This document shows positions 13,348 through 41,489 of a DNA stretch of 64,000 bases, piece by piece. This DNA is from Hyalangium minutum. GTDB lineage: Bacteria > Myxococcota > Myxococcia > Myxococcales > Myxococcaceae. Below the pieces are notes generated by a model. That model saw only the letters and a list, made by a program, of their open reading frames with translations, did no database searches and was not told the origin of the DNA. Position numbers and translations under genes: made by a program. The number at the start of each line of letters is the position of its first letter. Position 1 is the first letter of the stretch. The DNA is taken from assembly GCF_000737315.1 (NCBI RefSeq), contig NZ_JMCB01000001.1:186001-250000 (forward strand), given 5' to 3'.

Positions 13348-15492
13348 ATGCCTCAGGAGAAAGCGAAGAGCCCTGAGCAGCAGCCCTCGGAAGCGTCCGA
13401 GAGGCCCGATCCGACCCTGCCCGTAGGGAGCGGCGCTCCCGCCCCGGCAGGAGAGATGTCCCCCACCAACCTGCGCCCGGACGCCAAGAGCCCGGAGCAG
13501 TGGTGGGCGCCTCCGGAGACCTCTCCCGAGGGCCAACCCGGCTCCCCTCCCAAGGTCCCCACGCCCGTGACAGAGAAGAAGGACCCGCTCATCGGCACGG
13601 TGGTGGGCAGCTTCCGGCTCATCCGCAAGCTGGGCGGCGGCGGCATGGGCACCGTCTACCTGGGCGAGCACACCTTGATTGGCAGCAAGGTCGCCGTGAA
13701 GTTCCTCCACGAGCACTTCGCCTCCAATGAGGCCCTCGTCCAGCGCTTCCTCGCGGAAGCCCGCTCCGTCAACCTCATCGGCCACGAAAACATCATCAAC
13801 ATCTTCGACATGAGCCTGCTGCCTCCTCGCAGGCACTACCTCGTCATGGAGTACCTGGAGGGCAGCCCTCTCTCGTCCATGACGGGGAGCCCGCAGCCGC
13901 CCTCGGTGATCGTGCCGATCCTCACCCAGGTGTGCGATGCGCTTCAGGCGGCTCACCTCAACGGCGTGGTCCACCGGGACCTGAAGCCGGAGAACATCTT
14001 CCTCGTGCGGCATGACCGCACACCGCACTTCGTGAAGGTGCTGGACTTCGGCATCGCCAAGCTGCTCGACGGGGCGCACTCGCCGGGGCAGACCTCGATG
14101 GGCACCATCATCGGGACCCCGGAGTACATGGCTCCCGAGCAGTGGGCCGGCAAGGGCGTGGATGGGCGCACAGACCTGTACGCGCTGGGCATCATCTCCT
14201 ACGAGCTGCTCACCGGCCGCACGCCCTTCCCCAAGGGAGGGCTGGGGAGCCTGCTGCACGCCCACCTCCAGGAGCTGCCCCCTGCGCCCCACGAGCTGAC
14301 CCCGTCGGTGCCCCTGCCGCTCTCGCAGCTCGTCATGCGTGCCATGGCCAAGCGCCCGGAAGATCGCTTCCGGACCGCAGCCGAGATGCGCACCGCGCTG
14401 GAACAGGCACTCGCGGGGCAGGCACCGGCTCCGCTTCCGTCGCTCGCCACGCCCGCTCCTGCCCCAGTTCCCGCGGCCACACCGCCCTCGCTGCCGCTGG
14501 ACACGGCGATGGCCATTCCGGCGACGGCCCCCGCTCCGCCCCGGCGGCCCGCGTCTCCTCCGCCGCTCGAGGCCTTCGCCAAGGGGGTCCTCACTCCGGG
14601 CTCGGAGCCGCTCCGCATGAGCTGCACGGACCTGAGCCGCGCTGGGGCCTTCCTGTGCACCGAAGGCTCGCTGCCCCCGCTGCGCTCGCGCGTAGCGCTC
14701 ACCCTGGAGGTGCGCGGCCAGAACCTGCCCTGTACCGGCGAGGTTGTCCGCCACGTCACCCCGGCCCAGGCGGGCTCCTGGGGCATGCGCGCGGGCTTCG
14801 CCGTCCAGTTCATCAACCTGTCCGCCGAAGCCCGCGACGCCCTCTCCCGCCTCTCCCAGGGCCAGACAGCGCCCTCGGCCACCCCCAAGGTGCTCTCGGA
14901 CGATCCGCAGGCGGAGTCGCTGCTGACCATGCTCCAGCAGCGCATGAACGCCGACCCGTACGTGCTGCTGTCACTCCCCCAGAACGCCACGTTCGATGAA
15001 GTTCGCCAGCACGGCCGCGCCGCCACGAGCGCCCTGGAGACCATCGCCGCCCGGCCGCTGTCGGCCCGCCAGGCGAAGGAGCTCTCCGAGATGCGCTCGC
15101 GCATCGAGAAGGCCGCGGACCTGCTGGGACACCCCCGCCAGCGCATCGAGCACGACGCCTGGCGCGCCAACTACGCGGGCGTGGCCCGGTGCATCTCCAG
15201 CGGCCTCACCGCCACCGAGATCGAGTCCCTGCGCGCCCGCTACCTGGTGGCCCACCCAGGCACGGAGGCGCGCGAGCGCATCCACGCCGCCACCGCCTCC
15301 GCCTGGGAATCCCAAGGCAGCATCGGCCTGGCCCTGGCCGAATACGAGAAGGCGCTCGCCGCCGACCCGCTCAACCTGCAGCTCCAGCAGCGCTACTGGA
15401 ACCTCAAGCAGCGCGGCGTGAAGCCCACCCCACCCCCGGAGAGCAGCTCCAAAGAGGGCCAGGACGTGCCGGGGCTGCGGCGCCGCCGCTAG
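13348..15492 (+). CDS. Hanks-type Ser/Thr protein kinase with PilZ-like (TIGR02266-type) domain, J-like and TPR-like C-terminus
   Basis: LGGGGMGTVY, VAVK, HRDLKPEN, DFG, GTPEYMAPE; DLSRAGAFL...GFAVQF PilZ-like; DPYVLLSL J-like helix. Confidence 0.92.
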   Translation: MPQEKAKSPEQQPSEASERPDPTLPVGSGAPAPAGEMSPTNLRPDAKSPEQWWAPPETSPEGQPGSPPKVPTPVTEKKDPLIGTVVGSFRLIRKLGGGGMGTVYLGEHTLIGSKVAVKFLHEHFASNEALVQRFLAEARSVNLIGHENIINIFDMSLLPPRRHYLVMEYLEGSPLSSMTGSPQPPSVIVPILTQVCDALQAAHLNGVVHRDLKPENIFLVRHDRTPHFVKVLDFGIAKLLDGAHSPGQTSMGTIIGTPEYMAPEQWAGKGVDGRTDLYALGIISYELLTGRTPFPKGGLGSLLHAHLQELPPAPHELTPSVPLPLSQLVMRAMAKRPEDRFRTAAEMRTALEQALAGQAPAPLPSLATPAPAPVPAATPPSLPLDTAMAIPATAPAPPRRPASPPPLEAFAKGVLTPGSEPLRMSCTDLSRAGAFLCTEGSLPPLRSRVALTLEVRGQNLPCTGEVVRHVTPAQAGSWGMRAGFAVQFINLSAEARDALSRLSQGQTAPSATPKVLSDDPQAESLLTMLQQRMNADPYVLLSLPQNATFDEVRQHGRAATSALETIAARPLSARQAKELSEMRSRIEKAADLLGHPRQRIEHDAWRANYAGVARCISSGLTATEIESLRARYLVAHPGTEARERIHAATASAWESQGSIGLALAEYEKALAADPLNLQLQQRYWNLKQRGVKPTPPPESSSKEGQDVPGLRRRR

Positions 15493-26327: not shown

Positions 26328-28433
26328 ATGTCACCTAGGACTTCTCACCTCGCCTCGCCCTGCGCCCGAGCAGGCTTGCTGGCGCTCGCTTTGCTGCTCG
26401 GCAGCGCCTGCTCGGAGATGGATGCGGACACGGATCCGCTGGCGCGCATCACCCGCACGTTGGAAGCCTCGGGTGGAGCTGCCCCCCGCACGCTGGTGGC
26501 CAACGTGTACTACCGGGATCGCGCGGACCTCAACGCCCTGGCCACCGACTACGACGCGCTGGAGAAGGTGGATCGGCAAGCGGGCTTCGTGGTGCTCGCG
26601 CTCACGCCAGAGGATGCCCAAGCGCTGAGGGAGCGCGGCTACCGGGTGGAGCTGGACGAGAAGTCCACGCTGTCCGCCAACACGCCTCGTATCCCGGACG
26701 CGGCGCATCCCACGGGGATCACCTCCTTCACCTGCTACCGCACCATCGAGGAGAGCTATGCCTCCCTGGCCCAGCTCGCCGCAGCCCAGCCGAACATCGC
26801 CTCGTGGGTCGACATCGGGAACACCTGGGACAAGATCACGCGGCTCGGGCCTCCGGGGTACGACTTGTTCGCGCTGGTGTTGACCAACAAGGCACGGCCC
26901 GGGCCCAAGCCTCGCTTCTTCCTCATGGCCGCCATCCACGCGCGCGAGTACACCACCGCGGAGACGGCCACCCGCTTCGGCGAGTACCTCATCAACAACT
27001 ACGGCATCGATCCGGACGTCACCTGGATGCTGGACTACGGCGAGGTGCACATCGTCGTTCAGTCCAACCCCGACGGGCGCAAGGTCGCCGAGCAGGGCTA
27101 CACCCAGCGCAAGAACCGCAACACCACCAGCGGCAGTCAGACCTGCACCAACCCGCCCACGAACAGCAGCCAGTACGGCATTGACCTCAACCGCAACAGC
27201 ACCTTCGGGTGGGGTGGACCGGGCGCGAGCACGAGCCCCTGCAGCCTGACCTACCGGGGCCCGAGCGCGGCCAGCGAGCCGGAGACGCTCGCGCTCGAGA
27301 ACTACATCCGCTCGCTCTACCCGGACCGGCGGGGCCCCGGACGCGGAGACGCGGCGCCAGCGGACACGGAGGGCGTGATGATCTCCCTGCACAGCTACTC
27401 GGAGCTGGTGCTGTTCCCCTGGGGTGACAGCGAGTCCACCGTGCCGAACCTGGCCGGGCTGCGGGCGCTGGGCAAGCGCATGAGCTTCTACAACAACTAC
27501 GAGGCGTGCCAGACAGCCGTCTGCCTCTACGAGGCCGCGGGCGCCACGGATGACTTCACCTACGGCGAGCTGGGCGTGGCCTCGTACACCATCGAGATGG
27601 GCAACGACTTCTTCGAGAGCTGCAGCGCCTTCGAGGCAGACGTGTACCCGCGCAATTTCCCGGCGCTGCTCTACGCCTTCAAGGTGGTGCGCCGTCCGTA
27701 CCAGCTCGCGCAGGGCCCGGACTCGCGCTCGCTCACGCTGACGCCCGCCACCGTCGACCAGGGCCTGCCGGCCACCCTGCGCGCCACGGCGGATGACACC
27801 CGCTTCGGAAGCATTGGCGGCGCCGAGCAGACCCAGCCCATCATCGCCGCGCGTTACTCGGTGGATGCGCCCTCTTGGGTGCCGAACACGCCGGTCTACC
27901 CGCTGTCCGCGAGCGACGGTGCCTTCAACTCGACCCAGGAGCAGCTCACGGCCACGGTGAACACGTCCGGGCTGTCGTTCGGCCGCCACACCCTCTTCGT
28001 GGAGAGCCAGGACAGCTCGGGCGCCTGGGGGCCTCCCTCCGCCCTCTTCTTCACCGTCCATCAGCCTTTGCGCGCGGTCGGCGTGACGCCGGGCGCCTCG
28101 GGGACACAGGGAACGCGCGGGCAGCTCATCACCTACACACTGGACATCACCAACCAGGGCAGCCTTTCGGACTCGTTCCGGGTGGCGGTGACCTCGAGCT
28201 GGCCTGTCAGGACCTTGAGCTCGGTGGGGCCGCTGGGCGTGGGAGAGAGCTCCTCCGTGCAGGTAACGATCCTCGTGCCCCCAAACGCGCCGATGTGGAG
28301 CACGGACACCGCCCAGGTGCGCATCACCTCCATGGGAGATCCGCAGAAGGCGGCCACGGCCTCAATCGTCACCATGGCCACGAGCCCTGACCTGCCGCCG
28401 ACCTCCGTCACCGACGAGGACTCCACCTGGTGA
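26328..28433 (+). CDS. M14 zinc carboxypeptidase (lipoprotein) with C-terminal beta-sandwich domains
   Basis: IHARE, RKNR, DLNRN, SLHSYS, TIEMG; LGSAC lipobox. Confidence 0.9.
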   Translation: MSPRTSHLASPCARAGLLALALLLGSACSEMDADTDPLARITRTLEASGGAAPRTLVANVYYRDRADLNALATDYDALEKVDRQAGFVVLALTPEDAQALRERGYRVELDEKSTLSANTPRIPDAAHPTGITSFTCYRTIEESYASLAQLAAAQPNIASWVDIGNTWDKITRLGPPGYDLFALVLTNKARPGPKPRFFLMAAIHAREYTTAETATRFGEYLINNYGIDPDVTWMLDYGEVHIVVQSNPDGRKVAEQGYTQRKNRNTTSGSQTCTNPPTNSSQYGIDLNRNSTFGWGGPGASTSPCSLTYRGPSAASEPETLALENYIRSLYPDRRGPGRGDAAPADTEGVMISLHSYSELVLFPWGDSESTVPNLAGLRALGKRMSFYNNYEACQTAVCLYEAAGATDDFTYGELGVASYTIEMGNDFFESCSAFEADVYPRNFPALLYAFKVVRRPYQLAQGPDSRSLTLTPATVDQGLPATLRATADDTRFGSIGGAEQTQPIIAARYSVDAPSWVPNTPVYPLSASDGAFNSTQEQLTATVNTSGLSFGRHTLFVESQDSSGAWGPPSALFFTVHQPLRAVGVTPGASGTQGTRGQLITYTLDITNQGSLSDSFRVAVTSSWPVRTLSSVGPLGVGESSSVQVTILVPPNAPMWSTDTAQVRITSMGDPQKAATASIVTMATSPDLPPTSVTDEDSTW

Positions 28434-29665
28434 GGCGCTCCATGACACGGCTGTTCACCGCGCTCCTGGCCACCACCGCGCTCCTGGCCACAGGCTGCAA
28501 GAAGGAAGAGGCCCCCCGCGCGGATGCGGACTTCTACAAGAAGACCCAGGAGCAGCTGATCCGCGCCAAGCCGGGCACGGTCATCGAGCTGCCCGAAGGC
28601 CGTTTCCAGCTCGACCGGAGCCTGTCCTCCACCGTGGATGGCATCACCCTCCGCGGCAAGGGCATGGACAAGACGATCCTCTCCTTCAAGGGCCAGACCC
28701 AGGGAGCCGAGGGGCTGCTGGTCAAGGGCAACAACATCACCATCGAGGATCTGGCCATCGAGGACACGAAGGGCGACGCGCTCAAGGTCAACGGCTCGGA
28801 CGGGCTGGTGATCCGGCGCGTGCGGACCGAGTGGACGGGCGGTCCCAAGGCCACCAATGGCGCCTATGGGCTCTACCCTGTGCAGTGCCGGAACGTGCTG
28901 ATCGAGGACTCGGTGGCCATTGGGGCCTCGGACGCGGGCATCTACGTGGGCCAGTCCGAGCACGTCATCATCCGTCGCAACAAGGCGATGCGGAACGTGG
29001 CCGGCATCGAGAGTGAGAACACGAAGTTCGCGGACATCTACGAGAACACCGCGACGGAGAACACAGGTGGCATCCTGGTGTTCGACTTGCCGGATCTGCC
29101 CAAGCGCGGCGGCCAGGCCACGCGCGTCTTCAACAACGACATCTTCGCCAACACCACGGACAACTTCGCCCCCGAGGGGAACATCGTCGCCAAGGTGCCT
29201 CGGGGCACGGGCGTGATGATCATGGCCACCGACCAGGTGGAGGTGTTCCAGAACCGGATCCGCGACAACCCGACGGTGAACATGCTCATCGTCAGCTACT
29301 TCGTGGCGCAGAAACCCATCAAGGACAAGGGCTACGATCCCTACCCCGAGGCCCTCTCCATCCACGACAACACGTTCTCCGGCGGGGGAGAGTCGCCGGA
29401 CGGCGTGTTCTTGAAGCTGCTGGCGCTCAAGCTGGGCAAGCCGTTCCCGGACATCCTCTATGACGGGATTGTCGACGAGAAGAAGCGGACCCCGGCGGGC
29501 ACGCTGCCGGATGAGCTGCGCATCTGCCTCCGGAACAACGGCGATGCGGACTTCGCCAACGCCGATGTGGAGCACGACTTCGCGAACATCCGCAAGGAAC
29601 TGGCCCCTCATGACTGCCAGCACCCGAGCTACGCGCCGGTCCAGCTGACGGGAGTCATGCAGTGA
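28430..29665 (+). CDS. Parallel beta-helix lipoprotein (TIGR03805-like)
   Basis: LATGC lipobox; NGAYGLYPV, GASDAGIYVGQS, NVAGIESEN, NTGGILVFDLP. Confidence 0.85.
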   Translation: MRRSMTRLFTALLATTALLATGCKKEEAPRADADFYKKTQEQLIRAKPGTVIELPEGRFQLDRSLSSTVDGITLRGKGMDKTILSFKGQTQGAEGLLVKGNNITIEDLAIEDTKGDALKVNGSDGLVIRRVRTEWTGGPKATNGAYGLYPVQCRNVLIEDSVAIGASDAGIYVGQSEHVIIRRNKAMRNVAGIESENTKFADIYENTATENTGGILVFDLPDLPKRGGQATRVFNNDIFANTTDNFAPEGNIVAKVPRGTGVMIMATDQVEVFQNRIRDNPTVNMLIVSYFVAQKPIKDKGYDPYPEALSIHDNTFSGGGESPDGVFLKLLALKLGKPFPDILYDGIVDEKKRTPAGTLPDELRICLRNNGDADFANADVEHDFANIRKELAPHDCQHPSYAPVQLTGVMQ

Positions 29666-30789
29666 TGATGGGTCGTGTGCTGGTGGCCATGCTGGCCCTG
29701 GGGTTGGGGGCATGCAGCAAGGGGCGTGGGGAGGTCCACACCTTCGTGGAGGATCCCTATCCAGAGAAGCTGTCGGCGTGGGGGCTCTTCCAGGGTTCGG
29801 GCTGGACGCTCGAGCCCCAAGCGGGGGTCATCCCCTATTCGGTGAACACGCCGCTCTTCAGCGACTACGCGGAGAAGTACCGGACGATCTGGGTGCCTCC
29901 GGGCCAGGCGGCGCAATACCGGGACTCGGACGTGTTCGACTTCCCGGTGGGCACGATCCTGTCGAAGACGTTCATGTACCCGGTGGACGGGCGCGTGCCC
30001 GCGGCGCAGGGGCCTGGGCGGACGGCAGGCAACGCGGACAAGCGCTTCCGGCCAGTGGAGACGCGCATCCTGGTGCACGCGAAGCAGGGCTGGGTGTCCC
30101 TGCCCTACGTGTGGAACGAAGAGGGCACCGAGGCCACGCTGGAGGTGGTGGGCAGCAGCCGCAACGTGGAGGTGACGCACGCCTCGGGCGAGAAGCTGTT
30201 CGCCCACTACATGATCCCCAACGTGAACCAGTGCCAGGGCTGCCATGAGCGCGACAAGGCGATGACGCCCATCGGCCTCCAGGCGCGGCACCTGAACCGG
30301 GGCTATCCCTATGACGAGGGCCCCGAGAACCAGCTCGTGAAGCTGACGCGCGTGGGCTACCTGAAGGGCGCTCCGGCCCCCACGGCGGCGCCACGCAACG
30401 CCGTGTGGAACGAGCCCACCACGGGGACGCTGGAGGAGCGGGCGCGTGCGTATCTCGAGGCCAACTGCGCGCACTGCCACGATCGACGTGGACCCGCAGC
30501 GAGCTCGGGTCTGTACCTGGCCGCGCAGGAGAAGGATCCGCACACGCTCGGCCGCTGCAAGGCGCCCGTGGCCGCGGGCCGGGGCGCGGGCAAGGACCTG
30601 CCCTTCGACATCGTCCCCGGCAAGCCCGAGCGCTCCATCCTGGTGTACCGGATGGACTCGCAAGATCCGGGGGTGATGATGCCCGAGCTGGGGCGCTCGC
30701 TCATCCACCGAGAGGGCGTAGCGCTCCTCCGCGAGTGGATCCAACAACTCCAGGGCTCCTGCGACGACGAGCCCCGGACGGAGCGCTGA
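29662..30789 (+). CDS. SO2930-family diheme c-type cytochrome lipoprotein (TIGR03806-like)
   Basis: CQGCH and CAHCH heme motifs; KLSAWGLF, PLFSDYAEK, FPVGT, MPELGR. Confidence 0.85.
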   Translation: MMMGRVLVAMLALGLGACSKGRGEVHTFVEDPYPEKLSAWGLFQGSGWTLEPQAGVIPYSVNTPLFSDYAEKYRTIWVPPGQAAQYRDSDVFDFPVGTILSKTFMYPVDGRVPAAQGPGRTAGNADKRFRPVETRILVHAKQGWVSLPYVWNEEGTEATLEVVGSSRNVEVTHASGEKLFAHYMIPNVNQCQGCHERDKAMTPIGLQARHLNRGYPYDEGPENQLVKLTRVGYLKGAPAPTAAPRNAVWNEPTTGTLEERARAYLEANCAHCHDRRGPAASSGLYLAAQEKDPHTLGRCKAPVAAGRGAGKDLPFDIVPGKPERSILVYRMDSQDPGVMMPELGRSLIHREGVALLREWIQQLQGSCDDEPRTER

Positions 30790-30799
30790 AGGGAGGGCC

Positions 30800-31972
30800 T
30801 CACCGGGCGCGGCGGCGCTGTGCCCACCGCACCCCCCGTGCAGCCTGGGCCCAGCGCCCCTGGAGGCGCGCCTCGGAAGCCAACGCCTCCTCCCGCGAGG
30901 GCCCCTCCGGCAACAACCTCGCCGCGTGTGAGAGCACGAGCCGCTCCAGCGCCCACTCCTCGCACAGCCGCCTCAGGCCGGGCCCATCCAGCCCACACGC
31001 TCCCAGGAAGACCTCGCGATCCGGAGGCCGCACTCCGTGGCGCCGCCACCACTCGTCCTCGGCCTGCTTCACTTCCTCAGCGGTGGGCTCCAACCCCAAC
31101 GAGCGCGCCCAGCCCGCCAGGAGCGCCCGCCGCAGCCCCGCCTCGGCCAGCGCCGCGCTGTCCGGCTCCTGCTGCAGCACCGCCAGCACTTGGGAGGAGG
31201 ACACCGTCCGCCCCGCCAGCACGGCCACGCCCTCCTCCAACCTGCGCCGCCTCACCTTCGCGGGAAGCGAAGTCCTCACCCCTCCCCGGGGAGGCTTCAC
31301 CGGCGCGGCCGACGCCAGGAACGCCGCCGCCGCCCGGAGGCACGCCTGGGCATCCAGCGCCTGCAGATCCTCCACGCCCCGGGAGAACCATCCCTCCCAG
31401 CTTCCCCACGTGGCTGCGGACCAGGACGGGCGCTCGGCATCCAGGATCCGGCGCCAGGTGCGCTCCGCGTAGTAGAGGCGCTCGGCCACCGTCACCAGCG
31501 TCCGCGCCTGCCGCGCGTTGAGCACCCGCGCCGCCCGCGCCTGGGTCACCACGTGCCGGACATTCACCATCGGCACGGTGAGCGGCCGGTAGCCCTGCTC
31601 GGCGCCGGCGTGCCGCAGCGCCACCTCCGAGTCATCCACCAGCATCCCCGTCCGGTACCACTCGAAGATCTGCCCCACCCCTACCATGCCCTGCGCAGCC
31701 AGTTCCGCCGCGCGCAGCGCCCCCTGCCCTGCGCCCCCGAAGACGGCCACGCCCGCCTCCACCGCGGCCAGCAGCTCCTGGTGCCACACCGGCGGCAGGG
31801 CCTCGCCCACTCCATCGATCAGAGCGATGGCGCGGGGACGCAGCGCGAGCGCCCGCCACACATCCCCTCGGCGGGCCGGAGGCAGCACATGACAATTCAC
31901 CCACCGGCGCGCCTCGCCCACGGGCAGCGAGGGGCCCAGAAAGACAACGAGATCCTCAGGACGGCGTTTCAT
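30800..31972 (-). CDS. tfuA: TfuA-like protein (conserved motifs altered)
   Basis: VFLGPSL, ALIDG, VWHQE, GALRAAE, VGVGQIF, DDSEVA; ATGA-coupled to YcaO. Confidence 0.85.
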   Translation of the reverse strand: MKRRPEDLVVFLGPSLPVGEARRWVNCHVLPPARRGDVWRALALRPRAIALIDGVGEALPPVWHQELLAAVEAGVAVFGGAGQGALRAAELAAQGMVGVGQIFEWYRTGMLVDDSEVALRHAGAEQGYRPLTVPMVNVRHVVTQARAARVLNARQARTLVTVAERLYYAERTWRRILDAERPSWSAATWGSWEGWFSRGVEDLQALDAQACLRAAAAFLASAAPVKPPRGGVRTSLPAKVRRRRLEEGVAVLAGRTVSSSQVLAVLQQEPDSAALAEAGLRRALLAGWARSLGLEPTAEEVKQAEDEWWRRHGVRPPDREVFLGACGLDGPGLRRLCEEWALERLVLSHAARLLPEGPSREEALASEARLQGRWAQAARGVRWAQRRRAR

Positions 31973-33135
31973 GAGAGCTCCGAGATGCGCATGCCCGGCA
32001 CCACCACGCGCCGCACGTGCAGGCCCGACACGGGCGCGTCGAGCGTGAGGGCGGCCACCTGGGTGAAGCCCGCGCTCCGCAGGTGGTTCATCACCCGCCG
32101 CACGCTCCGCACCGGCGAGGCCTCCTCTGCGGCGAAGTCCGGCATGGTGTCGGCTTGACGCTTGGGGCGCACCGACGCACAGACCCGGGCGAGGCCTCGC
32201 ACCGCCCCGCGCTCCGCCGAGGACAACGGCTGCGGCGTCCCCTGCAGTGCCGAGAGCCGGGCACACGCGGCCTCCAGCAACGCACGCAGCAGCGCCTGAT
32301 CCCTCCCCAGCGCGCACGCATACCCCACCGTGAGCGGCACTGGCCCGTCCTCTTCATCCACCAGCACCGCCGCGGCCACCGGAAGCCCCACCGCCCCCGG
32401 TGTCCGCGAGGTGGGCGTCGCATCAAAGAGGTACACGCCAAACCCTCGCTTCTTCAAAATCCTGGCCAGCGCCTCCGTGCGAGGCGCCGCTCGCCCCAGC
32501 ACCACGGGCCCCAGCATGCGCCGCCGCATGGCCTCCTCCGTCCACCCGTCCGGCAGCGCCCGGGCGAGCTGATCCCGCTTCGTCGCCTCCAGCAGCGCCT
32601 GCAACAGCGCGCGCTGGGCATCTGGATCCGCCCCCGTGCCGTTGCGCGTCCACATCACGCTCACCGGCCCCAGCGCCACCGCGCCCGCGGGCGGGCAATG
32701 CACCCCCTGCGCCGGCACCCAGACGTTCCTCCGCGAGTGCAGCTCCGTGGCCTGCCTCCACGCGCACCGCACGGAGTCCCCCCACAGCCGGGGCTCCACC
32801 AGCCTCCCCGCCGAGCCCAGCGCCTCGGCGCTCCAGGCCTCACCGCTGCGCGGATCCAGCTCCGCGCGCGCGGCCCACACCAGCTGGCTCGTGGGGACGT
32901 GCTCCGCGGCCCAGAGCACCGCCGTCTCATAAAGCGCGCTCAGAGCCGCGTGCTCGAAGGTCAACCCCGGGCCCGAGCACGCTCCGAGCCCAGGGCTGCC
33001 GGGCCTCACGGCGCACGCCACCTCCACCCCCGTACGGTCCAATCCCGTCACCCTGGCCACACGGGTGACCTCCATGGCCTCAGCCAGCCGCTCTTGGAAA
33101 ATCTGCGAGACAAGGACGTGTTTGGTAGGAAGCAC
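31969..33135 (-). CDS. ycaO: YcaO-like protein, TfuA-associated type (catalytic motifs altered)
   Basis: VTRVARVTGLDRTG, NG, LLEA..RD, C-terminal VVVPG; start codon uncertain (33135 GTG or 33144 TTG). Confidence 0.85.
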   Translation of the reverse strand: MLPTKHVLVSQIFQERLAEAMEVTRVARVTGLDRTGVEVACAVRPGSPGLGACSGPGLTFEHAALSALYETAVLWAAEHVPTSQLVWAARAELDPRSGEAWSAEALGSAGRLVEPRLWGDSVRCAWRQATELHSRRNVWVPAQGVHCPPAGAVALGPVSVMWTRNGTGADPDAQRALLQALLEATKRDQLARALPDGWTEEAMRRRMLGPVVLGRAAPRTEALARILKKRGFGVYLFDATPTSRTPGAVGLPVAAAVLVDEEDGPVPLTVGYACALGRDQALLRALLEAACARLSALQGTPQPLSSAERGAVRGLARVCASVRPKRQADTMPDFAAEEASPVRSVRRVMNHLRSAGFTQVAALTLDAPVSGLHVRRVVVPGMRISELS

Positions 33136-33239
33136 GGCACACAACCTTAACTCGAAAACGAGCCCCGCAATCCACCCATCGTTTGCGCCCCCAGCCGCAT
33201 GGAGCGTGATAGGGGGGGAAAACAGAGGGAGTACGCCGG

Positions 33240-33725
33240 ATGATTCAGGTTGGAGATCCAGCGCCGGACTTCACCGCCACCGACTGCCAGGGGCGCCCCC
33301 TCTCCCTCTCCTCACTCCGAGGGCGGCGCGTGGTGCTGTTCTTCTTCCCCAAGGCGTTCACCATCGGCTGCACCCTCGAAGTGCGCGCTTTCCGGGACAA
33401 CCAGGCCCGCATCGAGGCGCTGGGCGCGAACCTGGTCGGAGTGTCCGTGGACTCCGTGGCCACCCAGTGCGCCTTCGCCGCCCGGGAGCACATCCACTTC
33501 GCCCTCCTCGGAGACGACGAGCGCCGCATCAGCAAGGCCTATGATGTGCTCTGGCCCGTGCTGAACGTGGATCGCCGCGTCACCTTCATCCTCGGGCCGG
33601 ACGGCAAGGTGGAGGCCGTCATCCGCCACGAGGCCCGCGTCTACCGGCACCTGGATGACGTCTTGCGTTACCTCCAGGACCACCCGCTCCCCGCCGCCCC
33701 GGGCACTGGGCCCTCACGCGGCTAG
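33240..33725 (+). CDS. Peroxiredoxin, Bcp/AhpC-TSA type
   Basis: GDPAPDF, FFFPKAFTIGCTLE, RVTFIL. Confidence 0.9.
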   Translation: MIQVGDPAPDFTATDCQGRPLSLSSLRGRRVVLFFFPKAFTIGCTLEVRAFRDNQARIEALGANLVGVSVDSVATQCAFAAREHIHFALLGDDERRISKAYDVLWPVLNVDRRVTFILGPDGKVEAVIRHEARVYRHLDDVLRYLQDHPLPAAPGTGPSRG

Positions 33726-34306
33726 TCCCACTGACAGAGGTACTCGCAGTGAGGCGCACCCTTGGCGACACACTTGGGGTGGGTGACGCGGACGGCGCTG
33801 CCGCCGGACAGCTCGATGGCGCGCTGGTGCCAGCCGACAATGGTGAGGCAGTCCGTCTCGGTGACGTTCTCCGCCCCGAAGGTGCGCAGGATGGCCGAGC
33901 GCGGGCCGAGCTTCTCGTAGGTGCGCGAGCCGACGGCGTAATAGAAGCGGTAGATCTGCGGCGCCTGGCTGAGCAGGAAGTGCGGCTCGCCCGGGCGCAC
34001 GAAGACGTGCTGGGCGCCCTTGAGGTTCTCGTCCGCCGAGGCCCGGCCCATGTCCATGAAGGCCCGGGTGCGGTCCTCGGGGGACAGCACGTCCGCGATG
34101 GCCGCGTCCAGGCGCAGGTTCAGATCGAACGGGTACCAGTTGATCGGAAGGATCATCTTCCGCAGCAGCGTCTGGTCCGCCGGAGGCAACCGCTTCAGCA
34201 CCTCCTCCAGACGCGCCTGCCCCCCCTGCTGGCGCACCAGGTTCAGCCGGGAGATGAGCACCGTGCCCTTGATGCGCGAGTGAGAGGGAGAACCGGCCGT
34301 GGCCAT
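33722..34306 (-). CDS. Myxococcales-restricted TIGR02265-like protein (V4R-like C-terminus)
   Basis: IKGTVL, WYP, GWHQRAIEL, C-x6-CEY-x2-W end. Confidence 0.7.
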   Translation of the reverse strand: MATAGSPSHSRIKGTVLISRLNLVRQQGGQARLEEVLKRLPPADQTLLRKMILPINWYPFDLNLRLDAAIADVLSPEDRTRAFMDMGRASADENLKGAQHVFVRPGEPHFLLSQAPQIYRFYYAVGSRTYEKLGPRSAILRTFGAENVTETDCLTIVGWHQRAIELSGGSAVRVTHPKCVAKGAPHCEYLCQWD

Positions 34307-34492: not shown

Positions 34493-35101
34493 ATGCGCCC
34501 CCGGTTGGCGGTGGCAAGCGCCCCTGCCCCTACAGATGAGGAGCTGTGCCGAGCCTTCCTGGATGGGGACGAGGCCGCCTTTGGCGTGCTGGTAGAGCGA
34601 TATCGCACCCTGGTCCTCTCGCTGGTCCGCCGCTTCGTCCCCCGGCCCGAGGACGCGGCGGACCTGGCGCAGCAGGCCTTTTTGAGGGCGTTGGAGGCCT
34701 CGCACCGCGTCTTCCTGAACTGGAAGTGGACGAGCTCCACCCCCTTCCGCTCCTGGCTGGTGCGGATTGCGCTCAACCTGGCGAAGAACCATGCGCGCCA
34801 GGGGAACCGCTGGCGCACCGCCCTGCTGACAGAGGTGGAGGATGCCTCGGCGGACCCGGGCGAGTCCCCCCAGGAGCGGCTGGAGCAGCAGGAGCGCGAG
34901 CGGCGCCTCCAGGCTGCGGTGATCGCCCTGCCCCGCCGCCAGCGCGAGGTCCTCACCCTCCGGGTGGATGCGGACCTGCCCTTTCGAGACATCGCCGAGA
35001 CACTCGGCATCACCGAGAACAATGCCAAGGTGCAGTTCCACCACGCCGTGAAGCGCCTGAAGGCGGAGGTGGCTGGCGCGCCAGAGGAGACGGACGAATG
35101 A
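34493..35101 (+). CDS. ECF RNA polymerase sigma factor
   Basis: DAADLAQQAF, FRSWLVRIALN, LPRRQREVLTL, IAETLGI. Confidence 0.93.
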   Translation: MRPRLAVASAPAPTDEELCRAFLDGDEAAFGVLVERYRTLVLSLVRRFVPRPEDAADLAQQAFLRALEASHRVFLNWKWTSSTPFRSWLVRIALNLAKNHARQGNRWRTALLTEVEDASADPGESPQERLEQQERERRLQAAVIALPRRQREVLTLRVDADLPFRDIAETLGITENNAKVQFHHAVKRLKAEVAGAPEETDE

Positions 35102-35646
35102 ACGCGTGCCCCGAGTACGAGGAGCTGCTGACGCTCCATGCCACCGGAGCGCTGGAGGCCCAGGACGAAGCTCGCGTCCGCGCGCACCTGGCCTCTTGCA
35201 CCGCGTGCCGAAGTGAGGCCGAGTCGACCGCGCGCCTCCTCTCGACCGTGGCGCTGCCGGCGCCCTCGCCAGCAATGCGGCAACGAATGGACACGCTGCC
35301 TCAGCGGACGCTGGGGGCGTGGCGGCGCGAGCAGGTGCGCCAGGCCTTCCGGGCCCGGACCGTGGGCGCGATGCTGGCTGCGGCGGCAACGGTATTGCTG
35401 GTGGTGAGCCCGTCGCTGCGAGGCGCGGGTCAGCCCAAGGGAACCGTGGCGCTGCCGACCGCAGTCTCGCAGCAGGAGGCAGAGTCCGAGTCCGAGTTTG
35501 AGCAGTGGGCCGTCGCGGATCCGCTCGGCGATGAGCTGGACGCACTGCTGGCCGATGAGGACTTGGACGAGTGGGACGAAGACGCCGAGATGGAGCCGTC
35601 CGCGAGTGAGCTGTTCTTGAACCCGAACCTGGGAGAGATGCCGTGA
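35098..35646 (+). CDS. zf-HC2 anti-sigma factor
   Basis: HLASCTAC (HxxxCxxC), TM helix, overlap with sigma stop. Confidence 0.85.
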   Translation: MNACPEYEELLTLHATGALEAQDEARVRAHLASCTACRSEAESTARLLSTVALPAPSPAMRQRMDTLPQRTLGAWRREQVRQAFRARTVGAMLAAAATVLLVVSPSLRGAGQPKGTVALPTAVSQQEAESESEFEQWAVADPLGDELDALLADEDLDEWDEDAEMEPSASELFLNPNLGEMP

Positions 35647-36173
35647 TGAAGCCGATTCGAGTGGCAGTGCTGACCCTGGCCTTGTTGCCGATGGCCGCGC
35701 TCGCGGCGGATCCGAATGCCCAAGCCCAGGCCCAGGCCCAGGCCGAGCAACGGGCGGAGAAGCAGCTGCGCCTGGCGCGGGTGCTGGGACTCGCCGAGGA
35801 ACTGGAGCTGGACTCACAGCAGGCCCTGAAGCTGGACGAGACGCTGCGCAAGTTCGACGAGCGGCGCCGCCCGCTGCGCGAGCAGGTCCGCGAGTCGGCG
35901 GACATCCTCGAGCGAGCGGCCGACGGGGACACCGCGGCGCTGGGCCAGGTGGAGCAGGCGGCGCAGCACGCGTTCGATGCCAGGGCACAGCTGGCGGCGC
36001 TGGATCGGGAGATGTACCAGTCGCTCTCCCGGGATCTGCCGCCGCAGAAGCGGGCGAAGCTGGCGCTCTTCATGGCGCGCTTCGAGAACCGGTTCAACAA
36101 GAAGCTCCGCGGGGAGCTGCGCGAGAAGGTGAAGAAGATGAACCGGTTCCGCGCACTGGACAACCAGGGCTGA
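35643..36173 (+). CDS. Periplasmic helical protein, Spy/CpxP/heavy-metal-sensor-like
   Basis: Signal peptide (ALA), coiled-coil content, LPPQKRAKL motif. Confidence 0.65.
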   Translation: MMKPIRVAVLTLALLPMAALAADPNAQAQAQAQAEQRAEKQLRLARVLGLAEELELDSQQALKLDETLRKFDERRRPLREQVRESADILERAADGDTAALGQVEQAAQHAFDARAQLAALDREMYQSLSRDLPPQKRAKLALFMARFENRFNKKLRGELREKVKKMNRFRALDNQG

Positions 36174-36191: not shown

Positions 36192-39100
36192 TCACCGAGC
36201 GGTGGCCCGGGCCTTGCGCTCCTCGCCCTGTGCGAACAGGGCCTTGAGCACGCGCCCGGTCGCCGTCTTCATCTTGCACAGCTCCCGAGGCGTTCCCTCC
36301 GCCACGATGCGGCCGCCCTCCTCGCCTCCCTCGGGCCCCAGCTCCACAACGTGCTCCGCGGAGGCGATGACGGACGGGTGGTGCTCGATCACCACCAGCG
36401 TGTCTCCCCGATCCACCAGCCGCCCCAGGAAGGTGATGAGCCGGTCCACGTCGCCCAGGTGGAGTCCCGTGGTGGGCTCGTCGAGCACGTAGAGCGTCGG
36501 CTCGTGGCGCGAGTTCGCCGTCAGCTCCGCCGCCAGCTTGAGCCGCTGGGCCTCGCCGCCGGACAGCGTGTTGGAGCCCTGGCCCAACTGCAGGTACCCC
36601 ACACCGAGGTCCGAGAGGCACTCCAGCGGCGCGGCCACCTTGGGCAGCGCGCGGAAGACCTCCTTGGCCTCGTCGGCGGACAGCCGCAGCACCTCGCCGA
36701 TGGTGAGCCCGTGGTAGCGCACCTCGAGAGTGGCCGCATCAAAGCGGGCCCCGCCGCACACCTCGCACGGCGTCACCACGTCCGGGAGGAACGCCATCTC
36801 GTGGGAGATGGCCCCTTGCCCCTCGCATGCCGGGCACCGGCCTCCAGCGGCGGTGTTGAAGGAGAAGCGTGCCGGACCGAAGCCCCGGATCTTGGCCTCG
36901 GGAGTGGCGGCGAAGGCGCGGCGCAGCTCGTCCCAGATGCCGAGGAACGTCGCCGGCACCGAGCGCGGTGTGCGCCCGATGGGAGACTGGTCCACCGCCA
37001 GCACGCGGGAGATCGCCTCCACGCCGTGCAGCGATTCGAACGGCCCAGGCTTCGGCCCCACCAGTCCAAGCTTCTCGCGCAGCGCCGGGTACAGCACCTG
37101 GCGGATGAGCGTGCTCTTGCCCGAACCGGAGACGCCGGAGACGACCGTGAGCCTCCTGACAGGCAGCCGGAGATCGACGCGCTTCAGGTTGTTGGCGCGG
37201 GCACCCTTCAGCTCGAGCCACTTCTGGGGCTCTCCGCGAGTGCTGGGAGGGCGAATCTGCGAGGCCCGGAGCGCCTTCGCGGTCGGTGAGTCCTCCCGTT
37301 GCAGCACGTCCTCCGGAGCGCCCTCGGCGAGGATGCGCCCACCGCCACGTCCGCCCGTGGGCCCCAGATCGATGAGGTGGTCCGCCGCGCGGATGGTGTC
37401 CGTGTCGTGCTCCACCACGAGCACGGAAGACCCCGTGTCCACGAGCGCCCGGAGGTTGGACAGCAGCCGGTGGGTGTCGCGCGGGTGCAGGCCAATGGTG
37501 GGCTCGTCGAGCACGTACAGCGCCCCCGTGAGCCCCGCTCCGAGCTGTGCCGAGAGGCGCAGCCGCTGCATCTCGCCTCCCGAGAGCGTGGCGGCGGCGC
37601 GATCCAATGAGAGGTAGCCCAGCCCCACGCGATCGAGGAACTCCAGGCGCCGGACAAGCTCCTGGCGCGAGGGCTCACCGATGAGCGCCCGATCCCCACG
37701 GAACTTCCAGCCCTGGACACGCGCCAGCGTGGCGGTGACGGAGTTCTGCACCACCTCGTGGTACCGCGCGTTCTCCAACCTCACGGCGCGAGGCACCGGA
37801 GACAGACGCGAGCCCTGACAGGTACGGCACGGAGCGGTGTGGCCCTCGGCGATGGCCTCGGCGCCGCCCTCGACACCTGTGCCCTCACAGGCCTCGCAGC
37901 GCCCCTGCTTCGTATTGAAGGAGAACCAGCGTGGGTCCAGCTCCGGCACAGCGGTTCCACAGCGAGGACAGGTGCGCTCGGTGGACAGCAGCGTCTCGCC
38001 CTTGGCGCTCCGCACTTTCAGCGCGCCCTGGCCCCAGCCCAGCGCCCGATCGAACACAGGGCGAGGCAGCTTGGCCAGCTTGCCCTCGTACATGACGAGG
38101 TCGATGTCGTGCTCGCGTGTCTTCGTCAGCCGTGGCGGGTTGTCCGTGTTGGCGATCTGCCCGTCCACGATGGCCGTGGTGATCCCCGCGCGAGCCGCCG
38201 CCGCGAAGAGATCCAGGTACGTTCCCTTGCGAGCCCGGACCGCGGGAGCCAGCACGGTGCCGTCCCCCTTCGACTCGGTGAGCTGTGCGTACAGCGCATC
38301 CGGCGAGGTGGAGGCAATCGGCGAGTCATCGTTCGGGCAGTGCGGCTGGCCCAGCTTGGCGAACAGGAGGCGCAGGTAGTGAGCCACCTCCGTCACGGTG
38401 GCCACGGTGCTCGTAGCGCCCGCGCGCGAGGTGCGCTGCTCCAGGGCCACGGTGGGCGGGATGCTGCTGATGCGCTCCACGTCCGGCCGAGGCATGGTCG
38501 GCAAGAACTGCCGCGCATACGGCGTCAGCGTCTCCAGGAAGCGCCGCTGGCCCTCGGCAAAGACGACGTCGAACGCCAGCGAGCTCTTCCCCGAGCCGCT
38601 GGGCCCCGTCACCACCGTCATCTTCCCCAGGGGAATGCGGCAGGAGATCTCCTGGAGGTTGTGCTCGCGCGCATGCTCCACCTCGATGGCCGGGCTGCCC
38701 GCGGCGGCCTTCCGAGGCTTCGCTGGGCGCCGAGCCCCGGTGCTCTCCTCGCGCAGGGCCGCTGCGGTGAGACCTGAGCCCTTGGCCAACTCGGCGGGAG
38801 TGCCCTCGGCCACCAGACGCCCACCATGCCGCCCACCGCCCGGTCCCAGATCGATGATCCAGTCCGAGCCCCGCATGACGGAGAGGTCATGGTCCACGAC
38901 GACGACGCTAGCGCCCCGCCCCACCAACTCGTGCAGCGCCGCGAGCACATGGCGCACATCGAGCTCATGCAGGCCCGCGCTCGGCTCGTCGATCAGGAAG
39001 AGCGAGCCCTTGGCCTCACTCGCCAGCGCCCGGGCCAACTTCAGCCGCTGCGCCTCGCCCCCCGAGAGCGTGGAGAGCGGCTGCCCGAGCGACAGGTAGC

Positions 39101-41489
39101 CCAGGCCGAGCCGCGCCACGGGCCCCAGGGTGCGCTTCAGCGCGGTATCGTCCCCGAAGTGCTTCAGTACCTCGTCCACGGTGAGCTCCAGCACCTGCGC
39201 GACGCTGAAGCCCTGGTGCTGGACGGCGAGCACCTCCTCCTTGAAGCGCCGGCCCCGGCAGACGGCGCAGCGCAGCGCCACGTCCGCGAGGAACTGCATC
39301 TCCACCGTCTCGTAGCCCTCGCCCGAGCAGGCCTCGCAGCGGCCCTTGTCCACGTTGAAGGAGAAGTGGGCGGCGGTCAGGCCTCGCACCTCGGCCTCGG
39401 GCTCCGAGGCGAAGCGCTCGCGCAGCCGATCCCAGGCCTTGGTGTACGTGGCGGCATTGCCTCGCGAGGTGCGCCCCAGCGGCGACTGGTCCACGAAGGT
39501 GATGGACTTCACCGTCTCGGCGCCCTCCAGCGCGTCTACCGCCCCAGGGGCCTCGATGTCCTTCTCCCCCAGTCCGCGCGCCAGGTGCCGGTAGAGCACC
39601 TCGTCCATCAGCGTGCTCTTGCCCGAACCACTCGGCCCCGTGATGGCGCACAGCACTCCCAGCGGAACGCGCACCGTCAAACCCTGGAGGTTGTGCTCAT
39701 GGGCATTGCGCACGACCAGCTCCCCCGTGCGCTGCCGAGTCGTGCGCGGCGTCTCCTGCGTCCCCGCCAGGAGCTGACCCGTGGGAAGGTCCGTCCGCTT
39801 CGCCAGGGCCTCGGGCGGACCATCGAAGCACAGCTTCCCGCCGTGCTTGCCCGCGCCAGGCCCCAACTCCAGGACCCGGTGGGCGGAGCGGATGACGTGC
39901 TCGTCCTGCTCGATGACGAGCGTGACGTTCCCTCGCTCCGCCAGCTCGGCCATGGCCTCGGTGAGCGGGCGTACGTCGCTGGGGTGGAGGCCCACGGTGG
40001 GCTCGTCCAGGACGAAGAGGGCCCCCGTGAGCGACGTGCCGAGCGCCGCGGTGAGCGACACGCGCTGGGCCTCGCCTCCGGAGAGCGTCCGCGCGGGCCG
40101 ATCCAGCGTGAGGTAACCCAACCCCACACGCAGCAAGTAGCGGAGCCGGCTGGCCAGCTCCTTGCGCGCCAGCTCGCCCTGGCCGGTGGTGGTGCGCAGC
40201 GACTCCAGGCGCTCGCACGCGTCGGACAGCTCCAGCCGGTGCCAGGCCGCCAGATCCAGCCCCCCCACGCGGTACGCCAGGGCCTGCTCGTTCAGCCGAG
40301 CCCCCTGGCACTTCTCGCAGAGCGAGTACGCCCGGTAGCGCGAGAGCAGCACGCGCACGTGCATCTTGTACGTGCGGCTCTCCATCCATCGGAACCACGC
40401 GCGCACGCCGGGGTACGAGCGCCCATCGTGGTAGTCACCCTCGCCCTCCAGCACCATCTCCCGCTGCTCCGGCTGGAGCGAGCTCCACGGCGTGTCCAGG
40501 GGGATGCCCATGGCCTTGGCGTAGCGGTGGAGCATGTTGCGCTCCCATTCCGAGGTCTTCCCGGACCACGGCCGGATGGCCCCCTGCGCGAGGCTGAGCG
40601 AGGGATTGGGGATGACCTTGTCCCAGTCGATGCCGATGGTGCGCCCGAAGCCCCGGCACGTGGCGCACGCGCCCGTGGGGGACTGGTAGCTGAAGAGCCC
40701 CGGGCGTGCGGGCTCGAACTCACGCGCGCACTTCGGGCACACGAGGCCTCGGCGGATGCGCCGCGTAGCGCCACCGGGGAGGAACAGCATGGCCTCGCCC
40801 TCGCTGCGCGCCCACGCGTCCTCGACCGCCTGGGTAAGGCGGGAGAGCTGCCCCTGCGCCAGCTTCACGCGATCCACCACCACCTGGGCGACGCCCGCGG
40901 AGTCCGTCGCCTCGCTCGGCCGCAGCGCCTCCAGCTCCCGCACCTCGCCCTGCACCACGAGCCGGTGGTAGCCGTCCTTGAGCAGCCGGGCGCGCACATC
41001 GAGGAACTCGGCGGTGCCAGCAATGCGCACGGGCCACGTGAGGATGACCTGCGCGTCCGGGTGCTCGGAGATGGCCGCCGCTGCCGCCACGCGCGCGTCC
41101 GTCCGGACTGCCTCCACGCCACAGGCGGGACATACCGGCATGGCCTCCCGGGTGAAGAGCGCGGAGAGGTAGGCCTCCACGTCCGCCAGCGTGGCCACTG
41201 TGGAGCGCGAGCTCTTCACGGGGGCCCGGCGATCCACTGCCACGCCGGCCGCCACCGGCTCGAGCTGGTCCATGGGCGGCCGCTCCAGCCGCTCGAGGAA
41301 CTGGCGAGCGTACGGGCTGAAGCTCTCCACGAAGCGCCGCTGGCCCTCGGCGTAGAGCGTGTCGAGCGCAAGGCTCGATTTCCCGGCACCGGAGACCCCG
41401 GTGATGCAGACGAGCTCTCCTTCCGAGAGATCCACGGAGAGCGATTGGAGGTTGTGGGTACGGGCGCCTACAAGGTGCGTCTTATGCAT
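36192..41489 (-). CDS. uvrA: Excinuclease ABC subunit A, tandem-duplicated form (1765 aa, four NBDs)
   Basis: Four Walker A ([16 protein letters not shown] x2, GVSGSGKS), four LSGGE and DEP motifs, CxxC zinc fingers. Confidence 0.93.

Follow-up and report, generated by a model that had tools for sequence, protein, structure and literature searches.

The window analyzed here is a stretch of 64,000 nucleotides from Hyalangium minutum (contig NZ_JMCB01000001.1, positions 186,001 to 250,000 of the forward strand). It carries an operon in which ycaO is followed directly by tfuA, with the stop codon of the first gene and the start codon of the second overlapping as ATGA (TCATGA) at 31969-31972. An original prediction, made from the DNA alone, held that ycaO is an intact, full-length gene at 31969-33135 with five motif replacements affecting its ATP/Mg-binding site, and that it encodes a pseudo-enzyme or a neofunctionalized YcaO kept under selection. 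Both proteins of the operon lack residues that are nearly invariant in their relatives, and a canonical ycaO-tfuA pair is present elsewhere in the same genome. The features of the locus are collected in Table 1.

The reading frame of ycaO is uninterrupted. The maximal open reading frame (ORF) is 31969..33144(-), with a TTG start and 391 codons. The GTG at 33135 lies three codons inside TTG 33144, is preceded by AAGG, and is the start common to the orthologs, so the predicted gene is correct to its exact start coordinate. Residues are numbered here by the 391-codon ORF; subtraction of 3 gives the number in the 388-residue protein. The GC content at third codon positions (GC3) is 0.88, comparable to that of the adjoining genes. 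The product is a member of the YcaO superfamily: its match to the Pfam YcaO family (PF02624) runs the whole length of the model (1-325 of 325), with E 2.8e-39 and a score of 135.8 bits where 25.7 is the cut-off. It falls under the curated cut-offs of NCBIfam, scoring 87 bits against 365 for TIGR03266, the equivalog for archaeal McrA-glycine thioamidation, and 71 bits against 75.65 for TIGR00702. An AlphaFold2 model of the protein (predicted local distance difference test score, pLDDT, 81.9; predicted template modeling score, pTM, 0.87) superposes with template modeling (TM) scores of 0.72-0.76 on 6pe3/6peu, the thioamidating M. jannaschii YcaO, and also on the structures of LynD, TruD, McbD and the M. 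kandleri and E. coli proteins. The model suggests that the YcaO fold is retained.

YcaO enzymes are defined by their ATP-binding motifs. A search of a protein collection returned 370 relatives of the window YcaO, from Hyalangium, Myxococcus, Corallococcus, Pyxidicoccus, Archangium, Cystobacter, Melittangium and Vitiosangium, at 55-97% identity. Five stretches, VCNGKGL, GALxETAELWAAE, WTSNGSGAHP, ALLEATERDQ and LLEAAQSRLTDIHGAREDV, are essentially invariant among about 100 cluster representatives (55-79% identity) from across the Myxococcales, and the same five are invariant also in Anaeromyxobacter-type relatives at 42-47% identity. The counterparts in the window protein are ACSGPGL, SALYETAVLWAAE, WTRNGTGADP, ALLEATKRDQ and LLEAACARLSALQGTPQP; in motif 1 the window YETAVLWAAE stands against the family ETAELWAAE. 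All five predicted replacements are present, and the consensus behind the prediction is borne out by computation, in the roughly 100 orthologs as in the more distant relatives. In total, 18 of the 80 positions that are at least 97% conserved among 81 canonical sequences are altered in the window YcaO (25, 50, 54, 55, 59, 76, 173, 182, 189, 294, 295, 300, 301, 303-306 and the C-terminal 391). Seventeen of these lie in or beside the motif stretches or are the C-terminal residue, the exception being position 25. Assembly error is ruled out, because the same residue states recur in independent assemblies, for example in P0001 (97% identity).

The ATP-site residues of E. coli YcaO, which we take to be S71, E75, E78, E199, E202, R286 and E290, were used to place the replacements, and the numbering in the alignment is consistent with that list. 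The hidden Markov model (HMM) alignment to E. coli YcaO spanned motifs 1 and 2 only; motif 3 was mapped via MJ1094, LynD and TruD together with the sequence register, and the match to McbD Q264 is by motif register only. In motif 1, a competent YcaO has an acidic pair with a preceding NGKG. Here E. coli N59-G-K61-G corresponds to S57-G-P59-G, with loss of the Lys; E75 is kept as E73, and E78 is lost, with V76 in its place. At the position of E. coli S71 the window protein has Ser69, where canonical relatives have Gly. In motif 2, expected to hold an S/T-N-G turn and an ExxER pair, S180-N-G has become R167-N-G, E199 and R203 are kept as E186 and R190, and E202 is replaced by K189. In motif 3, expected to read ExxQ, E290 is kept as E291, Q293 is replaced by C294, and the HGxRxD stretch common to archaeal thioamidating YcaO is gone. 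The alignment to characterized and myxobacterial proteins proposed with the prediction is in line with it: two of the replacements fall on E78 and E202, and the canonical orthologs do not have the replaced residues.

Three ATP-binding motifs have been described as common to all YcaO proteins (PMC8120280). E202A has served as an ATP-binding-residue replacement control in E. coli YcaO, where such replacements left thioamidation of ribosomal protein uL16 incomplete (PMC13063428). In McbD, E167A, which affects a Mg-coordinating Glu, almost completely abolished processing, and Q264A (a Gln of the ATP sphere) and T148A (a conserved beta-turn Ser/Thr) each caused a major decrease. The C-terminus of McbD and of LynD inserts into the active site, and the C-terminal residue adds to activity (PMC6395948).

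The partner TfuA is altered as well. Of 72 positions conserved in at least 97% of 76 canonical TfuAs, 7 differ in the window protein: F56G, S61P, S82G, L120R, L135M, K204Q and D356E. The canonical TfuA profile aligns with the archaeal TfuA 6xp8 over residues 4-213 (E 4.5e-51). The GGASMGALRA stretch around S82 is identical in 6xp8, and both S82 and K204 are conserved from the archaeal structure to the myxobacterial family. A Ser-Lys pair of TfuA hydrolyzes the ThiS thiocarboxylate (ThiS-COSH), feeding sulfide to YcaO, according to a passage of PMC13185837 that cites Liu et al. 2021. S82 and K204 are probably this catalytic pair, because K204 is the only family-invariant Lys and S82 stands in a GxSxG-like motif; the window TfuA has Gly82 and Gln204 at these conservation-assigned positions. 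All myxobacterial TfuAs examined also have a C-terminal extension of about 180 residues (215-390 in the window protein), which has no Pfam match and is missing from the 217-residue 6xp8. It is well conserved, for example in EAGLRRALLAGWARS, in canonical and divergent copies alike.

The altered YcaO motifs are common to 16 matches, which comprise groups A, B and C and one intermediate. Group A consists of the window protein, P0001-P0004, P0065 and L082, and is marked by xGPG, by V, A or T in place of the second Glu, by RNGTGAD and by EAACARLSALQGTPQ. EATKRD, with Lys189, is limited to the window protein and P0001, and the Glu equivalent to E202 is kept in the other clade members. Group B consists of P0005 and P0067 (the latter recovered also as L041 and L088) and has GHG. 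Group C consists of P0006, P0008, P0010, P0014, P0038, P0116, P0120, L083 and L116-L118, and has EGQG, RNG[TS]AAH and EAARSRLTxLHGTQ. The intermediate is P0045 (L119). In the neighbor-joining reconstruction of YcaO, groups A and C branch from a long stem as one clade (bootstrap support 100%), which lies among canonical Hyalangium-type sequences, and the neighbor-joining tree of TfuA has the same clade with the same long stem, again with 100% support. The altered motifs thus define a monophyletic clade of more than ten intact sequences. S82G, K204Q and F56G are found in every divergent operon with an alignable tfuA; the group B TfuAs are outside this comparison, as neither contig reaches far enough.

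L119 is a separate event, pairing with Myxococcaceae bacterium GXIMD 01537 with bootstrap support of 100% in the YcaO tree and 92% in the TfuA tree. This locus (L119:6404-8715; Logan SRR27067942) is a partial independent repeat: its YcaO has DGKG, RNG, EAARARLRSLHGAREDV and an SELP end, and its TfuA has Gly for Ser82, as in the divergent clade, with Lys204 kept. A different kind of change was seen in an otherwise canonical metagenomic ycaO (L093:3963-5020; Ga0164243_10031209), in which the frame is lost before motif 3 (RTSTARARTW...) and the tblastn match ends at 4625. A true frameshift in this copy and a fault of assembly are both possible.

ycaO-tfuA is found in one conserved block across dozens of Myxococcaceae and Archangiaceae genomes. 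The order of the block is a UvrA-like gene of 1765 codons, a small ORF, a zf-HC2 anti-sigma factor, an extracytoplasmic function (ECF) sigma factor, a DUF2378-like gene, bcp (in some genomes), ycaO-tfuA, and (in some) diheme cytochrome-like and beta-helix genes. bcp is missing from some relatives, several members of the divergent clade among them. The window copy is the ancestral-locus copy, since the gene order around it matches that of these dozens of loci, and all divergent copies retrieved with flanking sequence, the window copy included, lie in the ancestral block.

The H. minutum DSM 14724 assembly (GCA_000737315.1) has a second pair. Exact-protein look-up placed the window gene on JMCB01000001.1 and the canonical P0027, with its TfuA, on JMCB01000005.1. 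The P0027 YcaO is fully canonical (NGKG, ETAELW, SNG, EATERD and EAAQSRLTDIHGAREDV), as is the TfuA of its operon (GGASMGALRA and EDLKRLDA). The two H. minutum paralogs are 70% identical for YcaO and 73% for TfuA, and the neighborhood of the P0027 operon differs from the ancestral block. The same arrangement recurs in the metagenome-assembled genome SMAG_U11958, with the divergent, syntenic L041 and the canonical, non-syntenic L007, and in all three Joint Genome Institute (JGI) metagenomes with a divergent copy, each of which also has a non-syntenic canonical copy (L082 with L087, L083 with L085, L088 with L086). Genomes with a canonical syntenic copy have a single locus among those returned.

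The non-syntenic canonical copies form their own clade in the tree. Their number of synonymous substitutions per synonymous site (dS) is about 0.5 to both other groups, and that between divergent and syntenic canonical copies is 0.42-0.45; from these distances, it is the window gene that is truly orthologous to the syntenic gene, the canonical copy being either an older duplicate or a xenolog. Identity ranks are congruent between the two copies across four host pairs, and the upstream flank of the canonical copy is partly common to H. minutum and L087, so both operons were evidently inherited together since the ancestor of the clade. Comparison of L007, L085 and L087 shows unrelated flanks around the canonical copy. 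Between most genomes only about 2.3 kb of DNA is shared around the canonical second copy (L121:10001-12339, that is JMCB01000005.1; L120/L007, L085 and L087), with sharp boundaries and different neighbors. No transposase or integrase was seen beside it, and with the partly shared flank of H. minutum and L087 this does not give the copy the appearance of a freely mobile element. An alpha/beta-hydrolase gene adjoins it in two genomes and was considered as a mobile-cassette component; this was rejected because the two genes encode unrelated hydrolases.

The divergent genes are maintained. None of nine divergent ycaO coding sequences (eight complete, with L088 cut by the contig end) has an internal stop. 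The complete ones are near the canonical length, with a five-residue insertion in L116/P0006, and tfuA is intact wherever the contig reaches far enough. By the method of Nei and Gojobori (NG86), the pairwise ratio of nonsynonymous to synonymous substitution rates (dN/dS) inside the clade is 0.19-0.35 (window versus L113, 0.19; window versus L082, 0.22), compared with 0.20-0.33 for canonical syntenic copies and 0.23-0.28 for canonical copies at the second locus. TfuA dN/dS shows the same behavior. A binomial test on the NG86 counts rejects neutrality in all of the pairs tested, five for ycaO (P 4e-6 to 4e-16) and four for tfuA. Simple decay is rejected, because the dN/dS of the clade matches that of the canonical orthologs.

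The rate of change has shifted along the sequence and over time. Measured against the outgroups, to which dS is equal (about 0.6-0.67), the canonical sequences have a dN of 0.184, and groups A and C reach 0.268 and 0.240, respectively, which indicates a burst of amino acid change on the stem of the clade. Conserved positions changed somewhere in the clade number 19 of 39 in the three motif segments and the C-terminus versus 7 of 42 elsewhere (Fisher P = 0.004), and three of these seven (50, 53 and 54) are directly beside motif 1. Within the clade the motif positions match ordinary sites in variability (0.51 and 0.43 bits, respectively), and they show zero variation in a canonical set of equal breadth. 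Total variability is equal, at 0.41 bits in the clade and 0.40 in the canonical set. It is raised in the clade at residues 44-83, 164-183 and 284-313, and lowered at 234-263 and at 104-163 (0.10 versus 0.38 bits, P = 1.6e-5), where P values are indicative only, the windows having been picked on inspection. The pattern is one of functional shift: the active site has been freed of constraint, and other regions have come under constraint that is new or stronger.

The best reading of these observations is a pseudoenzyme pair, or a strongly neofunctionalized pair, kept beside an active paralog. The prediction had named both possibilities and selection to maintain the gene; it holds up, with canonical orthologs that do not have the replaced residues, with dN/dS far from 1 and neutrality rejected in every independent pair tested, and with the second canonical ycaO-tfuA, which it had marked as worth looking for, in the same assembly. 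A pseudoenzyme is defined as an enzyme homolog lacking conserved catalytic motifs (PMC10211241). The window YcaO has the sequence features of this definition, and its functional inactivity is predicted. We infer from the missing residues that the window pair has lost catalysis, and would assign it a binding or regulatory role; the two proteins are probably naturally occurring "dead enzymes" that have taken on a new function other than catalysis.

The history may be envisaged as follows. A second, fully canonical ycaO-tfuA operon would have existed in the ancestor that H. minutum has in common with its closest uncultured relatives and would have made the ancestral-locus pair catalytically redundant. 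That pair would then have undergone the burst of amino acid change, which would have removed the ATP/Mg residues of YcaO (in the window, the NGKG Lys, the SNG Ser, the EAAQSR Gln, the equivalents of E78 and E202, and the C-terminal Leu) and the conserved Ser and Lys of TfuA, probably its catalytic pair. Ordinary purifying selection on both proteins would have followed, with YcaO constraint tightened at 104-163 and 234-263 and freed at the old active site. The window pair would no longer perform ATP-dependent thioamidation fed by the ThiS thiocarboxylate, and would be retained for a function of its fold and of surfaces outside the nucleotide pocket. A binding role appears most likely, in which the pair would hold or compete for a protein or peptide substrate, or would partner or regulate the canonical YcaO-TfuA. 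We assign a probability of roughly 0.7 to the reading that the window operon is the ancestral-locus pair, that its ATP/Mg residues and TfuA Ser and Lys were lost in a burst followed by purifying selection, and that a binding role has replaced thioamidation. A more specific proposal is tentative and rather doubtful, namely that the co-degenerated dead YcaO and dead TfuA are a non-catalytic binder (a reader, chaperone, competitor or substrate trap) of the protein target of a thioamidation system found throughout the Myxococcota, or an inactive subunit or regulator of the canonical pair.

Several points weigh against loss of catalysis and a binding role. The ATP-site residues E73, E186, R190, D191, E291, R296 and N168-G169 survive, and group C keeps both Glu pairs, so some nucleotide binding may be possible. 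Both the binding role and the protein target of the canonical myxobacterial pair are hypothetical. The TfuA Ser-Lys assignment is by conservation alone, and another conserved Ser (S15) is kept. The NG86 dN/dS values are approximate in a 70% GC genome, and the motif segments and entropy windows were partly picked after inspection of the data.

The surviving residues are also the basis of the main rival, in which the pair is neofunctionalized and still catalytic, with a new chemistry, cofactor or sulfur source acting through these residues and perhaps the new Ser69. E73, E186, R190, D191, E291 and R296 are kept across the clade, the Ser at the E. coli S71 position was gained in group A, new constraint has appeared at residues 104-163, group C is less degenerate, and purifying selection is as strong as in the active paralogs. 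However, no single new conserved set has emerged: groups A, B and C differ, with K59 changed to P, H or Q, Q294 to C, S or R, and E76 to V, A or T or kept. The former active-site positions vary as ordinary sites do, and the joint residue loss in YcaO and TfuA fits loss of a shared reaction better than redesign. Continued catalysis of a new kind is therefore unlikely, although it deserves to be kept in mind.

That the pair is an ordinary active thioamidase, its substitutions tolerated and its reaction redundant with that of the second operon, is quite improbable. The operon architecture, including the ATGA overlap, is unchanged, and overexpressed E. coli YcaO variants with single ATP-residue replacements gave incomplete rather than zero modification (PMC13063428). 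In the window, however, 18 near-invariant positions have changed together, including the equivalents of two Mg-binding Glu residues, Ser82 and Lys204 of TfuA are lost too, and the changed motif positions never vary in about 100 canonical sequences, the paralog of the same genome included. Least credible of all is early pseudogene decay, in which the pair became redundant after arrival of the second operon and has yet to acquire stops. The canonical paralog makes the window pair dispensable in principle, and dN is accelerated on the stem branch. Yet no internal stop occurs in the nine divergent coding sequences, among which dS reaches about 0.5, and tfuA is intact where covered; the ratio of nonsynonymous to synonymous differences (pN/pS) is 0.20-0.33 and neutrality is rejected; overall variability equals that of the canonical copies, with some regions more conserved; and GC3 is typical of coding genes. 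A pseudogene would be expected to have a broken frame or a dN/dS indistinguishable from 1, and neither was found.

[quoted passage not shown] They have the same fold. The methanogen ycaO-tfuA pairs have the same two-gene architecture with stop/start overlap (PMC5589413), and MJ1094 shares its EVAQSR...HGxRxD stretch with the canonical myxobacterial family. The window YcaO differs from the thioamide-forming enzymes in lacking the second Glu of motifs 1 and 2, the Gln of motif 3 and HGxRxD, and its TfuA lacks the conserved Ser and Lys. Unlike the McrA and thioamitide systems, no McrA-like substrate or RiPP precursor was found in the 64-kb window, which also yielded no RiPP recognition element (RRE), dehydrogenase or ThiS-like gene. 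E. coli YcaO, the thioamidase of uL16 Met82 (PDB 4Q84-4Q86), shares the YcaO domain and the aligned registers of NGKG, S71/E75/E78, SNG, E199/E202/R203 and E290/Q293. Like it, the myxobacterial family appears to be of a housekeeping type with a protein target rather than a clustered precursor peptide. E. coli YcaO differs in being TfuA-independent, in its C-terminal dimerization domain, and in keeping all ATP-binding residues, where the window protein has Val and Lys at E78 and E202.

Catalytically inactive E1-like partners (ThiF/MoeB-like and RRE-bearing) of azoline-forming YcaO cyclodehydratases, such as McbB and the N-terminal domains of LynD and TruD, are a precedent for enzyme-derived substrate binders in YcaO pathways, McbB being the leader-binding partner (PMC6395948). 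In those systems the dead component is of another fold and YcaO is active, whereas here both YcaO and TfuA are degenerate and the active paralogous pair is elsewhere. Pseudoenzyme paralogs such as pseudokinases, pseudophosphatases and beta-amylase9 are, as here, under purifying selection beside an active paralog; unlike them, two interacting enzymes of one pathway have degenerated together here. Neither a YcaO or TfuA pseudoenzyme nor a function of myxobacterial YcaO-TfuA was found described in a literature search. A YcaO-TfuA system with both proteins degenerate is new; the kind of system is not.

If true, no pseudo-YcaO would have been described before this one, and it would offer a natural way in to the thioamidation target. 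The dead pair may bind the same target as the canonical pair and could serve as bait. It would test, as a clean experiment of nature, what a YcaO-TfuA complex is capable of when catalysis is gone. Attention is also drawn to a little-studied system: canonical ycaO-tfuA is syntenic across the Myxococcaceae and Archangiaceae, the pair is found also in Anaeromyxobacter-type relatives, and no precursor peptide is nearby. By analogy, the myxobacterial system resembles the protein-directed thioamidation of McrA or of ribosomal protein uL16. These points are relevant to enzymologists of RiPPs and of post-translational modification, and the strain is cultured, so they are directly testable.

Table 1. 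Features of the divergent ycaO-tfuA operon and its neighborhood, in window coordinates
Feature	Position	Strand	Remarks
Divergent ycaO	31969..33135	-	388 aa from GTG 33135; PF02624 and YcaO fold (fold from model)
ATP/Mg motif 1 region	32902..32982	-	aa 55-81; ACSGPGL...SALYETAVLWAAE; NGKG Lys to Pro, second Glu (E. coli E78) to Val
ATP/Mg motif 2 region	32569..32655	-	aa 164-192; WTRNGTGAD...LLEATKRDQ; SNG Ser to Arg, E. coli E202 equivalent to Lys
Motif 3 region	32227..32283	-	aa 288-306; LLEAACARLSALQGTPQP replaces LLEAAQSRLTDIHGAREDV; E. coli Q293 equivalent to Cys
C-terminal residue of YcaO	31972..31974	-	Ser replacing family-invariant Leu
Divergent tfuA	30800..31972	-	390 aa; PF07812, E 4e-38; ATG overlaps ycaO stop
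TfuA Gly82 for conserved Ser	31727..31729	-	GGASMGALRA to GGAGQGALRA; Ser77 of PDB 6xp8
TfuA Gln204 for sole family-invariant Lys	31361..31363	-	EDLKRxDA; aligns with DIKRQDA of 6xp8
Conserved ancestral neighborhood	33240..41489		Gene order as in dozens of Myxococcaceae/Archangiaceae loci
bcp peroxiredoxin	33240..33725	+	
DUF2378-like	33722..34306	-	
ECF sigma factor	34493..35101	+	
zf-HC2 anti-sigma factor	35098..35646	+	
176-aa ORF	35643..36173	+	No Pfam match
UvrA-like gene	36192..41489	-	1765 aa

The UvrA-like protein of the block is about twice the usual length of UvrA and has UvrA_DNA-bind and UvrA_inter domains that are repeated. Across the Myxococcaceae and Archangiaceae loci compared it is 75-94% identical, and it always shares the block with the ECF sigma/anti-sigma genes and ycaO-tfuA. 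On the other side of the operon, two genes are convergent with tfuA. One (29662-30789, + strand) encodes a 375-residue protein with two CxxCH heme motifs and no Pfam match, and the other (28430-29665, + strand) a protein of the beta-helix (NosD-like) type. In several relatives the two are found conserved downstream of ycaO-tfuA. Further away, and unconnected with YcaO-TfuA, the window encodes at 13348-15492 (+ strand) a Ser/Thr protein kinase whose C-terminal domain is PilZ, which is an unusual combination.

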